A DNA stretch of 64,000 nucleotides, taken from IMG/VR virus record IMGVR_UViG_3300045974_000132, positions 124,001 to 188,000 of that record. The stretch is one strand, 5' to 3'. Positions 32,655 to 45,401 of this stretch are shown here, in pieces. Within the stretch, counting starts at the first letter, position 1; each line of letters opens with the position of its first letter. The position numbers were made by a program, and so were the translations under genes. Under the pieces are notes generated by a model that did not search any database, was not told the DNA's origin, and worked only from the letters and a program-made list of their open reading frames with translations.

Positions 32655-33107
32655 TTATCTGTTATCTGCAACAAGAAGAAAGGCATTTTGATGCTCCGAC
32701 GTTTGGGTAGAGTGGCTCTTAAGCCAAGGTATAAATTGTGCGTCATCTACTAGGATGTGCTTTGTCAGCCAGTCAACAACAAGAGTACGCAACTCTTCTA
32801 GGATGCACGTACTAGCATCAATGAACAAAGGTCGAGAAATCTGCTCGAACAGGTTGTCAAGCTGATACGTCAAGGCACGATGTTGCATTACATGACTAGC
32901 GTATCCTTCCCACCCTTTAATTAGTTCTTCTTCATGTTTAAGATGCGTCCATACGTATTCGTACAACTCTGCGGCAATATCAAAAGAACTTAGCAAAGAA
33001 GTTCCGTTTAAGATAGCTTCCAGCCTATTACTAAGGTAGAACAACTTGATATGTTCTTCGTCAATAACAGGAACACCTAAAAGGTAGCTTTCGACAGAGA
33101 TAGTCAT
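32655..33107 (-). CDS. bacteriohemerythrin
   Basis: IDEEH, HLKHEE, HVMQH, WLTKHILVDD: full di-iron ligand set. Confidence 0.9.
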   Translation of the reverse strand: MTISVESYLLGVPVIDEEHIKLFYLSNRLEAILNGTSLLSSFDIAAELYEYVWTHLKHEEELIKGWEGYASHVMQHRALTYQLDNLFEQISRPLFIDASTCILEELRTLVVDWLTKHILVDDAQFIPWLKSHSTQTSEHQNAFLLVADNR

Positions 33108-33205
33108 TTTATTATGTCCTTAAACACACTTACAGTAGCACACTATCTTAGTTTGAATGTCGGCTCTTATAACAATCTATATAGATAATGTGCTTTCGTA
33201 AGTGT

Positions 33206-33590
33206 GCCGCTCACCTATTTTGGTAATAAGGACTCCGTCATTATCAGGAGAGTGAGCGGCTTAACAAACCAAAGTCTGTTAGTGACCCCATCCGTTTAGG
33301 TGCTGTTAGGCAGCCTTCCGGAAAGACGCATCATTCGCGGCAATTACAAGTTTAGCCCGGTTTAACGAGAGTACAATGCTCGGATCGTTCTTTATCAACT
33401 ACTCATGCCCAATCGAAACCAGGTCAGGCCCATCAGGATCGTTCTATGTATCACCCACCCCGGTGACCTCAGCCTTGCGGTAGGACCTTTCGGCACACAG
33501 AACGATTTTGGTGGACCTGGGGAGAATCGAACTCCCGTCTTGAACACTTTTATTTCAAAAGTCTCATAAGCAAAGTTGTTCCGGTAGCTA
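33206..33590 (-). ncRNA. ssrA: circularly permuted (two-piece) tmRNA
   Basis: T-arm and CAGGTCC-ACCA (33509-33540) lie upstream of the 5' strand GGGCCTG (33431); G3-U70 pair; tag ORF (A)ANDASFRKAA* at 33306-33341; outer boundaries approximate. Confidence 0.9.
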
Positions 33591-33646
33591 ATCGGCTTTA
33601 CTTACATACGATCATATTCCTTAACACGCCAATGATTACGTGTTAG

Positions 33647-34180
33647 TTAAGACCTACGCTTGATTGACATAAAGCCGATCATACCAAGGCCGGCAAACAT
33701 CATAGCGTAGTTCTCAGGTTCGGGCACAGAAGAAATGACGCTTGCTGCGATAGGAGCAACAAGTGACGCATCAATGTGACCGCCCAAAGCTTGGAAGGCA
33801 CCTACTTGATTACCATATAGTGTCAGCACAAACGGTGACTTGGTATTAACAGAGATAACACCAAAGTCAAAGCCCGGACCAGTAAGGATAGGGGCGCCGA
33901 AAGCACCATTCAGATTAGTCTTAGACCAATCAATGTTCAAGCCAGAACCACCGAAAGAGGATACAACATGATACGTACCCAGAACAGCAGTAGTCGGTAG
34001 CGTAAACGTAAATACGTCAGAGCCACCATCAAGAACAGAAGGTCCAAAGTTGGCGAAGTCAGCAACGTAACTCTTGGAAGCTGTGTCAAAAGACAAGCCA
34101 GAAGAACTATCCGATGCCCAAGCGCCTTGCAAACCCATTGACAGAACAAGGGCAACAAGCAGAGTTTTAAACCACTTCAT
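33647..34180 (-). CDS. PEP-CTERM exosortase-target surface protein
   Basis: Signal peptide MKWFKTLLVALVL...AWA; C-terminal VPEPENYAMMFAGLGMIGFMSIKRRS. Confidence 0.9.
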   Translation of the reverse strand: MKWFKTLLVALVLSMGLQGAWASDSSSGLSFDTASKSYVADFANFGPSVLDGGSDVFTFTLPTTAVLGTYHVVSSFGGSGLNIDWSKTNLNGAFGAPILTGPGFDFGVISVNTKSPFVLTLYGNQVGAFQALGGHIDASLVAPIAASVISSVPEPENYAMMFAGLGMIGFMSIKRRS

Positions 34181-34237
34181 TAAGAAATACTCCCTAGGTG
34201 AGTTGAAAAGAAATTTTATTATGTAAGTAAAATTGGG

Positions 34238-34450
34238 GAGAAGTGCTTGCCCTACTACTAAGAGGCTCGAAATGGACGATGAAACCAAAGCGAGATACAG
34301 GCTATTTTGAAAGTCGCCGAGACGACTTGTTAGCAAGCACTTCTCTTACACGGGTGAGAGGTATTGAACGTTTTCCACCGAAAGGAAAACCAACGAGGCA
34401 CAACGTACAGGCTATTTATCGTCGCCGAGACGACTAGTCCAATACCTCTC
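34238..34450 (-). ncRNA. two tandem related structured RNA modules
   Basis: 13 bp and 11 bp perfect closing stems; both contain AGTCGTCTCGGCGAC and AAATAGCCTGTA. Confidence 0.65.
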
Positions 34451-34455
34451 AAAAC

Positions 34456-34530
34456 TGGTTGAGGATGACGGGATCGAACCGACGACCCTCTGCTTGCAAG
34501 CAGAGGCTCTCCCAACTGAGCTAATCCCCA
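34456..34530 (-). tRNA. atypical tRNA-Ala(UGC), possibly pseudo
   Basis: U1-A72, G3-U70, ACCA; palindromic anticodon arm with a 6-nt loop TTGCAA. Confidence 0.75.
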
Positions 34531-37318: not shown

Positions 37319-38109
37319 TTTTGTTACTTGAAACTTTTTACAGTTTTACTTTCGACCGTAGTATTTTAGCTTACGCTGGGTAAACCGATAGTTGTACCGA
37401 TAAGCAGAAGCTAGATCCTTCAATAAGAAACTAAACCTACGTTGCACTATACGTTGCTGCGTTCGGACTGTACGAAGTTTGCTCCTGATCGAAGTTGTCG
37501 AACGATTGTAGTACAACCTCTTCGACCAAAACTTACGAACATAAGGAGACCAATATTCACCAGCACGAATTACATAGGTGGCCATTATGTTTTCACCCAT
37601 TGGGCTAAGAGAGGGCCGTTCGTTGAGTTGTCCAAATAACGCTGATACTGAAACAGAAGATTATCCAGCCAGCTATTACGACTTCGCAGGTTTATCTTTT
37701 TCATAAGCCTCTGCATGTCATCACTCTCTGGCGCAAGCTCTAAGAGTTTTGCAATTGCGGGTGCATATCGAGTATAGTCCGTACGCAGCGGCATAGGAAA
37801 CTCGGGCATTTCGTATATGCGATCATCTTGCACTGCCGAAAGAAAAACCTTAGCAGTATGGACGAAGCCGTTGTACACGTTTGCAAAGCACGGGAAGGTA
37901 ACTATGTAGCAGTCAGTGTCAAGCATCTTTCCTGTATGCTTTACCCAAACATTAGCATAACGCAAGGCAGATTCTTGATTACGCAAATTGGACTTCAGAT
38001 GAAAGTCTTTGCAGTTGTGAATACCCATGTCCATAGAACGGACTTGGTAGCCACCTGCTCCCGCAACGAAATAAACAAGAATCATTTTAGCCTACCTTGA
38101 TACAAAAGT

Positions 38110-38145
38110 TGGTGCCCCCGGTCGGAATCGAACTGTTAACTGAGC
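38110..38145 (-). pseudogene. 3' remnant of disrupted resident tRNA (Thr-like)
   Basis: AGCTCAGTT...GTTCGATTCCGACCGGGGGCACCA; acceptor strand complementary to GCCCCCG at 38882-38888. Confidence 0.85.
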
Positions 38146-38154
38146 TTGTGTATA

Positions 38155-38239
38155 TGGTGCTGAGGGCGGGACTCGAACCCGCGTGTCCTTTCGGAGCCGG
38201 ATTACAAATCCGGTGCTGTCGCCACTGAGCCACCTCAGC
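38155..38239 (-). tRNA. tRNA-Thr(UGU) with long variable arm
   Basis: GCTGAGG/CCTCAGC, CCGGA-TTTGTAA-TCCGG, variable arm TCC-GAAA-GGA, ACCA. Confidence 0.9.
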
Positions 38240-45274: not shown

Positions 45275-45309
45275 TGGTAGGCCCGGTCAGACTTGAACTG
45301 ACGACCAAA
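45275..45309 (-). pseudogene. 3' half of disrupted resident tRNA (Ile2-like)
   Basis: TTTGGTCGTCAGTTCAAGTCTGACCGGGCCTACCA. Confidence 0.9.
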
Positions 45310-45323
45310 TACTTAAACTAACT

Positions 45324-45401
45324 TAGTGGGCCCAACTGGATTTGAACCAGTGACCCTCCGGTTATGAGCCGGGCGCTGCTAACCAACTGAGCTATAGGCC
45401 C
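45324..45401 (-). tRNA. tRNA(CAU), probably Ile2 (or elongator Met); encoded end CTA not CCA
   Basis: GGGCCTA/TGGGCCC, CCCGG-CTCATAA-CCGGA, TTCAAAT. Confidence 0.88.

Follow-up and report, generated by a model that had tools for sequence, protein, structure and literature searches.

Genomic context of the tmRNA gene

A circularly permuted gene for a two-piece tmRNA is located on the minus strand of the 64-kb window analyzed here, i.e., the whole stretch of DNA from positions 124001 to 188000 of a 286,393-bp viral record with direct terminal repeats that was rated 100% complete. The RNA type in question frees stalled ribosomes. The window also encodes a DnaB-like helicase, both topoisomerase II subunits, and a Dda-like helicase, and ARAGORN placed seven tRNA genes in it on the same strand as the tmRNA gene. 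The phage is a lytic-looking jumbo phage with the tmRNA gene among its tRNA genes.

Searches of the complete phage genome gave no match to PF01668 for SmpB, no SspB, no RF-1/ArfB domain, and no bona fide integrase above the cut-off. Since SmpB, SspB, and an RF-1/ArfB protein are missing from the genome, the RNA must work with the SmpB, AlaRS, EF-Tu, and RNase P of the host. There is no sign that the gene is a remnant of integration into a host ssrA gene. The best cultured matches of topoisomerase II, at 38 to 42% identity, were from Phage NCTB, Dickeya phage JA29, Achromobacter phage Motura, and Pseudomonas phages Lu11 and PaBG; the four closest cultured phages by this protein (NCTB, Motura, Lu11, and JA29) have no permuted tmRNA.

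The source of the phage is a pond metagenome, and the phage was present only in two pond DNA runs, the second one at low depth, with an identical sequence and no variants. In RNA runs, 5% of the words were found, all from the conserved tRNA-like part, and none of these runs holds the tmRNA sequence.

The upstream ORF (33647-34336, minus strand) ends in a C-terminal PEP-CTERM sorting motif (21.4 bits; cut-off, 20.7), which may be a weak hint at a host with exosortase, and the downstream ORF (32655-33107, minus strand) contains a hemerythrin HHE domain. The tRNA at 34456-34530 (minus strand) has an 8-nt anticodon loop and was reported as 'tRNA-???' (tgca) by ARAGORN, with an Rfam tRNA score of 49.7 bits; its depth in the pond runs was about 60 to 100 times that of the flanks, which points to near-identical tRNAs in abundant organisms there. 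In tRNA-Thr(UGU) at 38155-38239 (minus strand), 11 nt are inserted into the variable region. Directly downstream of this tRNA (~38105-38150) and of tRNA-Met at 45326-45401 (~45275-45310), on the same strand, lie orphan stretches that resemble a T-loop and end in ACCA; no tool calls them as tRNA, an example being GUCAG-UUCAAGU-CUGAC-CGGGCCU-ACCA.

Identification of a permuted two-piece tmRNA

A permuted 'tmRNA*' with the tag AANDASFRKAA* was called by ARAGORN at 33215-33601 on the minus strand. The Rfam model RF04321 (tmRNA_permuted) matched the same strand at 33306-33571 with 89.3 bits against a gathering score of 47 and an E value of 7.7e-16 for the whole 64-kb window, all model positions from 1 to 213 being covered. 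Among the three older lineage-specific Rfam models of permuted tmRNA, the best fit was obtained with RF01850 (beta_tmRNA), now merged into RF04321, which aligned at 33261-33604 (66.1 bits, E value of 8.6e-20), below its gathering score of 84 bits; the outer P2 helices of this model have no match in the phage gene. Judged by these scores, the phage RNA appears closest to the betaproteobacterial two-piece type, yet divergent from it.

In the gene, the T-arm, the 3' strand of the acceptor stem, and CCA lie upstream of the 5' strand of the acceptor stem, the D-loop analogue, and the tag frame. The gene as a whole spans 33206-33601, where the 5' limit of 33601 is from ARAGORN (at least 33571 by Rfam) and the 3' limit was set where the last stem of the pseudoknot ends. 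The fold of the whole precursor has a z score of -3.4, and the T-arm, the acceptor stem, and the stem closing the intervening segment are retained in the minimum-energy structure.

The reading as a circularly permuted two-piece tmRNA carried by a phage, given in the initial annotation from the sequence alone, is supported by two independent detectors, by the piece-by-piece anatomy, and by the phage genome context. The check proposed there with ARAGORN and the Rfam permuted models gave both the permuted call and the RF04321 match, and the order it described, with the acceptor piece before the coding piece, was found as ACCA at 33512-33509, GGGCCUG at 33431-33425, and the tag at 33341-33306. A sigma-70 consensus scan upstream of the gene returned no site. 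Long-range pairing of the far 5' region (UUAGC, CCGG, and CAACU) with the stretch preceding the resume codon was considered and rejected, as it appeared only in cofolding with an assumed 5' end and was without comparative support.

Acceptor piece and tRNA-like domain

The acceptor piece (33509-33601, with a tentative 5' end), which forms the 3' half of the tRNA-like domain and ends in an encoded ACCA, was located by ARAGORN, Rfam, and direct reading. It contains the P2a 5' strand GUGUUCAA (33540-33547), the T-arm GGGAG-UUCGAUU-CUCCC (33520-33536), which was also present in the minimum-energy fold, the acceptor-stem 3' strand CAGGUCC (33513-33519), and the discriminator A with the encoded CCA (33512-33509). 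The acceptor-stem 5' strand GGGCCUG (33425-33431) is the 5' end of the coding piece, and together the strands make a tRNA-Ala-like stem of 7 bp in which the U of CAGGUCC faces G3. The predicted G3.U70 pair could therefore be read directly from GGGCCUG/CAGGUCC.

The D-loop analogue GGUUUCGA (33413-33420) falls in an invariant block at columns 10 to 19 of the alignment, in which CUGGUUUCGA is invariant across the 31 sequences. Both elements for SmpB binding, the T-arm with a GUUCGAUUC-type loop and the D-loop analogue GGUUUCGA, are present in the phage RNA.

The two pieces are linked by the helix P2a, formed by GUGUUCAA and the 3' strand UUGGGCAU (33405-33412), with 8 bp, three of them G.U. The pairing across the pieces noticed at the outset agrees with this helix of the Rfam model. 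In related phages the sequence of P2a differs and its complementarity is kept, e.g., UAUGCUG/CAGCGUA in one of the relatives (G003).

Intervening segment

Between the pieces lies a 77-nt segment (33432-33508), presumed to be removed from the precursor, which folds with -30.3 kcal/mol (z score of -3.1). It is closed by a perfect 12-bp stem with one G.U pair, formed by AUCGUUCUGUGU (33506-33495) and ACAUAGAACGAU (33449-33438), with a duplex energy of -17.8 kcal/mol (z score of -4.6). The stem is followed by the leader CCUGAU immediately before G1. The length given for this segment in the initial annotation was exact, and so was its closing stem; the GNRA-capped hairpins also described there did not hold, since GAAA and GCAA are present as internal-loop strands in the minimum-energy fold and capping mini-hairpins with GNRA loops costs 2.7 kcal/mol (-27.6 versus -30.3 kcal/mol).

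Both the closing stem and the segment are ordinary for the permuted tmRNA family. The length of 77 nt compares with 30 to 194 nt in the collected permuted tmRNAs, and a stem of 10 to 13 bp running from just after CCA to just before the YUGAU leader was found in 30 of 40 family members at z scores below -2. The sequences of this stem in related phages are different yet complementary. A 10-nt direct repeat, AGAACGAUCC, was observed on the minus strand at 33436-33445, in the 3' arm of the intervening stem, and at 33382-33391, before the hairpin at the PK1 position; owing to this repeat, AUCGUUCU after CCA could pair with either copy in the precursor.

Coding piece and tag frame

The coding piece starts with G1 at 33431, the presumed RNase P cleavage site. 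At the PK1 position, the hairpin CGAG-CAUUGUACU-CUCG (33366-33382) corresponds to the <<<<>>>> element of Rfam, and its CGAG/CUCG stem aligns with CGAC/GUCG in the nearest subgroup (L096/L088), a compensatory change. No convincing second PK1 stem was found in the phage gene by direct reading and cofolding, and the same was true of the L096/L088 subgroup; both PK1 stems are present in G003 by direct reading of the alignment.

The resume context GUAAUU (33347-33342) contains the UAA..GC pattern that is invariant or nearly so in the alignment. It is followed by the tag frame GCC GCG AAU GAU GCG UCU UUC CGG AAG GCU GCC UAA (33341-33306), which ARAGORN, Rfam, and direct reading gave alike and which comprises 11 codons for AANDASFRKAA*. 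By the conserved UAAnn-GCN spacing, the predicted resume codon is GCC, and this codon lies 90 nt from G1, compared to 82 to 110 nt in the collected family. The tag frame and sequence proposed earlier as (A)ANDASFRKAA stood, except that 11 codons are encoded; including the tmRNA-borne alanine, tagged products would receive (A)AANDASFRKAA, which exceeds the usual length by one Ala. The extra Ala codon is missing from most relatives and is found likewise in L079.

3' pseudoknot and downstream hairpin

The coding piece ends in a pseudoknot (33206-33292) recognized by the family motif, by the covarying stem S2, and by direct reading. Its S1, conserved in the family, pairs GAUGGGG (33292-33286) with CCUUAUU (33231-33225), and S2, fully covarying across members and here in the phage's own sequence, pairs GCCGCUCAC (33260-33252) with GUGAGCGGC (33214-33206). 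The motif GAUGGGG...CCUUAUUACCAAAA was seen in other members, in which S1 GAUGGGG likewise pairs with CCUUAUU, followed by ACCAAA. The closing stem, the YUGAU leader, and the 3' pseudoknot with the CCUUAUUACC motif are all present in the phage gene. The low coordinate of 33206 in the initial annotation coincides with the end of the last pseudoknot stem and is a better 3' limit than the 33215 of ARAGORN.

Two hairpins are inserted in the pseudoknot, hairpin A at 33262-33281, identified by direct reading, and hairpin B at 33233-33250, common to related phages, with the loop UGAUAAUGAC. The loop GAUAAUGA was also considered as a genome-wide promoter motif and occurred only 16 times in the genome, near chance.

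Directly 3' of the gene, folding revealed a long hairpin (33123-33208) of two 12-bp stems with a small internal loop, whose membership in the gene is uncertain. With -34.1 kcal/mol and a z score of -6.6 it is unique in the genome, and 16 nt separate it from the next ORF. In G003, the equivalent place is occupied by a hairpin whose arms (GUGUGCU/AGCAC) are similar. The element is possibly a terminator or a processing signal.

Permuted tmRNAs in related phages and in bacteria

A sequence pattern describing where the coding piece begins retrieved about 50 permuted tmRNAs from IMG/VR contigs, and in our own scan beta-like permuted tmRNAs were found within at least nine viral contigs of 126 to 282 kb. 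The complete 281.6-kb contig G001 (IMGVR_UViG_3300049182_000044, L019) was matched by 158 ORFs of the phage in syntenic blocks with a mean identity of 42%, and G003 by 56 ORFs. A third relative, G006, was compared by its topoisomerase II homologue alone, shared at 33% identity. Listed together with L019 as distant relatives are IMGVR_UViG_3300043423_000073 (L040) and IMGVR_UViG_3300010965_000002 (L050), all of them having a permuted tmRNA with an odd tag end and the 3'-domain hairpin described below. The conservation of the gene in distant phages at about 36 to 42% protein identity argues for selection.

The permuted tmRNAs of G001, G003, and G006 scored 83 to 98 bits with RF04321. The beta model was again the best of the older models for the related phages, with 68.9 to 81.6 bits, below the cut-off of 84. 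The tags differ at their ends, being AANDASFRKAA in this phage, ANESSFRMAA in G003, ANDSHFLQAANA in G001, and ANDAQFLQAANA in G006, with the odd ends QAANA and FRMAA among the relatives. A small hairpin with the loop YGAUAAUGA is present in the 3' domain of all four phages. In the phylogenetic tree, G001, G003, G006, and Xoo-sp13 formed a group with support of 83/93, and the RNA under study stood apart on a long branch of 1.13 changes per column, which fits with evolution that is fast or relaxed. On whether the tmRNA of this phage group arose once, the tree gave evidence neither way, the branch being too long for this sequence to be placed.

The permuted tmRNA of the Xanthomonas jumbo phage Xoo-sp13 (L002:1480-1823, plus strand, corresponding to MN047793.1 39030-39373; RF04321, 65.7 bits) lies unannotated in the gap between CDS 87 and 88 and was missed by ARAGORN; its tag, read from the alignment, is approximately (A)DNVDSFDFAMAA. 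As a relative of the phage itself, Xoo-sp13 was rejected, with only 10 shared ORFs.

Queries with neighbor genes and the topoisomerase II proteins found no close relatives in IMG/VR. A degenerate pattern for the identical tag peptide had no matches in IMG/VR and JGI metagenomes, and a 25-nt pattern had none in bacterial genomes. An exact 28-nt pattern of the T-arm and acceptor stretch was discarded as a probe for relatives, since in IMG/VR it matched nothing but tRNA-Ala genes of phages and a single standard tmRNA. A looser 19-nt pattern matched mostly unrelated standard tmRNAs and Cupriavidus permuted copies in bacterial genomes and gave no host clue. Strong permuted tmRNAs were found in only 4 of 151 genomes of the order containing Cupriavidus. 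In two Cupriavidus genomes (G014 and G017; L277, L278, and L280), two to four permuted copies above the cut-off scored 79 to 157 bits, some on very short contigs, and the extra copies may be on mobile elements. Among the contigs listed as viral, the 15-kb IMGVR_UViG_3300009012_000046 carries 31 tRNA genes and a bacterial RNase P RNA of class A (L004:7997-8439, 162 bits).

Tag end and proteolysis

The collected set contained 92 distinct tags, 76 of which end in AA. Position -3 is occupied by L, M, V, or I in 73 of the 92 and by K in three, and position -4 by A in 66 and by R in eight. The RKAA end is unusual, not unique, and one 187-kb viral contig has a tag ending in VDKAA. A standard one-piece tmRNA at L093:4335-4701 (IMGVR_UViG_3300028920_000002, 187 kb) encodes the tag ANDNATPALAVDKAA, which also ends in KAA.

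In a screen of C-terminal 5-mers in Escherichia coli, the terminal Ala-Ala was critical for the ClpXP degron, the consensus was [LFYW][LAR]LAA, Arg at position 2 was unexpectedly favorable, and mildly positive tags were enriched (PMC10862746). FRKAA fits four of the five positions of this consensus, which is derived from E. coli, not the host of the phage, and keeps the terminal Ala-Ala, the aromatic residue at position 1, and Arg at position 2. The suggestion that RK in place of LA alters the choice of protease is speculation and is not favored by this fit to the degron consensus. Most likely, FRKAA would still work as a ClpXP-type degron, perhaps a weaker one, and the evidence leans against a drastic change of protease.

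The first part of the tag (AANDxxF) looks like the SspB-binding part of ssrA tags. In a structure model with SspB of E. coli, tag residues 1 to 8 were placed in the peptide groove with a score of 0.87, compared to 0.03 for the best control, the partner pLDDT was at least 82, and the runs agreed in at least 97% of contacts. In calibration, 51 of 78 solved complexes passed the mark, as did 2 of 108 mismatched pairs, counts that apply only roughly here because proteins shorter than 30 residues were not part of the calibration set. The model may recall the solved SspB-ssrA complex and would indicate likeness, not binding, E. coli not being the host. A weakened or SspB-dependent degron is possible.

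Proposed function and alternative explanations

Taken as a whole, the locus is in all likelihood an intact gene for a beta-type two-piece tmRNA, probably functional, in a lytic-looking 286-kb jumbo phage; each conserved element is intact and at family-typical spacing. The gene would be transcribed as one precursor in which CAGGUCC and GGGCCUG are predicted from sequence and fold to form the acceptor stem, topped by the 77-nt stem-loop in the manner of the paired trailer and leader of a tRNA. By analogy with the maturation of the two-piece RNA of Caulobacter, the host RNase P would cut before G1 (33431) and 3' trimming would stop at CCA (33509), so that the acceptor and coding pieces would be released and remain joined through the acceptor stem and the 8-bp P2a. 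According to the identity rules of tRNA-Ala, G3.U70 and the discriminator A would make the RNA a substrate of the host AlaRS. With host SmpB and EF-Tu, it would enter ribosomes stalled on broken or stop-less mRNAs, translation would resume at GCC (33341), adding (A)AANDASFRKAA and ending at UAA, and the ribosome would be freed. The presumed benefit to the phage is that ribosomes are kept available during infection.

A tRNA-Ala-like gene or a chance structure mistaken for tmRNA might be suspected from the 28-nt T-arm and acceptor stretch, which is identical in tRNA-Ala genes of other phages. The halves of this gene are in permuted order, however, an anticodon arm is absent, the full 213-position model was matched (E value of 8e-16), and the tag frame is at the family-typical distance; together with ARAGORN and the alignment of invariant blocks, these observations ruled out such a false positive, the chance of which is negligible. 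The gene might also be an inactive passenger, i.e., a host or prophage ssrA copy that was picked up and is now decaying. tmRNA genes are common integration sites of prophages and fragments of them occur in phages (PMC9004378), and the long branch, the score below the beta cut-off, and a PK1 that is not evident fit with decay. Against it, nothing in the gene is broken: the acceptor stem, G3.U70, the T-arm, CCA, the D-loop analogue, P2a, the resume context, the open tag frame with its stop, the closing stem, and the 3' pseudoknot are all intact, and an integrase is absent, which leaves decay quite improbable.

A further explanation concerns the fate of the tagged protein. The RNA might rescue ribosomes with a tag that is uncoupled from proteolysis or retuned for it, so that degradation would be slow, would occur only with SspB, or would involve another protease, or the RNA might compete with the host tmRNA. 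The degron end drifts in this jumbo-phage group (KAA, MAA, and ANA), all four related phages have non-canonical ends (AANDASFRKAA, ANESSFRMAA, ANDSHFLQAANA, and ANDAQFLQAANA), K at position -3 is as rare as three tags against the 73 of 92 distinct tags with L, M, V, or I, the N-terminal AANDxxF that docks on SspB in the model is kept, and a tmRNA-like RNA of phage DS6A that inhibits host tmRNA is on record as cited in PMC11915505. The terminal Ala-Ala, a critical determinant for ClpX, is nevertheless kept in this phage and in G003, and Arg at position 2 and the aromatic residue at position 1 favor ClpXP degradation in E. coli. We consider this variant unlikely; it is compatible with a functional two-piece tmRNA and not exclusive of it. 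More speculatively, the jumbo lineage of this phage, G001, G003, and G006 might have kept a two-piece tmRNA vertically, with the degron end drifting (KAA, MAA, and ANA) and the hairpin with the YGAUAAUGA loop added to the 3' pseudoknot, the RNA serving rescue with a retuned or adaptor-dependent fate of the tag and the hairpin binding a phage or host factor; this combined scenario is doubtful.

The intact and probably functional two-piece tmRNA is a complete and well-documented addition to the large phages that bring their own ribosome-rescue RNA, and it indicates that beta-like two-piece tmRNAs whose tags end unusually are found in an uncultured group of freshwater jumbo phages. Should these variants turn out to affect degradation, nature would have provided tests of the tuning of ClpXP/SspB recognition, and the variants would help to tell whether rescue, tagging, or both are needed by phages. 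The analysis is also of value for annotation, as a like gene in Xoo-sp13 was overlooked by ARAGORN and the depositors.

Comparison with known tmRNAs

Permuted two-piece tmRNAs occur in three bacterial lineages (PMC11915505), and the alphaproteobacterial, betaproteobacterial, and cyanobacterial lineages named in the initial annotation agree with PMC11915505 and PMC9004378. In the count of Buchholz et al., 53 unique forms out of 133 phage tmRNAs were two-piece (PMC9004378), and published examples are from the OM43 phage Melnitz, the Xanthomonas jumbo phage XacN1, the Stenotrophomonas phages Moby and Mendera, and the Caulobacter phage Ccr29 (PMC9004378, Table S1). Phage-borne two-piece tmRNAs are thus already known, and the gene described here appears from its sequence to be another, rather divergent example. 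It shares with the published ones the permuted ssrA in a virulent phage, which in many cases is of large size and has tRNA genes, and differs in belonging to a different phage lineage. Melnitz contains a riboswitch, whereas no such Rfam match was found here. tmRNA together with SmpB was described in huge phages (PMC7162821); unlike some of these, which encode SmpB, this phage is without it.

Compared to the beta two-piece tmRNA (RF01850), the phage gene has the same order of acceptor piece, intervening stem-loop, and coding piece, the same start of the coding piece GGGnnUGnnCUGGUUUCGA, YUGAU leader, UAAnn-GCN resume context, and AND... tag start, and the same 3' pseudoknot with the CCUUAUUACCAAAA motif. 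It differs in its score of 66.1 bits, under the cut-off of 84, compared to 127 to 157 bits for the bacterial examples from Cupriavidus, in the unmatched outer P2 helices, in two extra hairpins in the 3' pseudoknot, in a tag that is one Ala longer and ends in RKAA, not ALAA, and in being phage-borne. The RNAs of G001, G003, G006, and Xoo-sp13 are likewise beta-like permuted tmRNAs with non-canonical tag ends and the YGAUAAUGA-loop hairpin in the 3' domain, yet they are almost unalignable with it outside the tRNA-like domain. With the one-piece SsrA of E. coli (AANDENYALAA), the phage RNA has in common the tRNA-Ala-like domain with G3.U70, the AAND..aromatic start of the tag, and the terminal Ala-Ala. 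In contrast to SsrA, it is made of two pieces, has a single 3' pseudoknot in place of PK2 to PK4, shows a PK1 apparently reduced to a hairpin, and carries Lys for Leu at position -3 of the tag.
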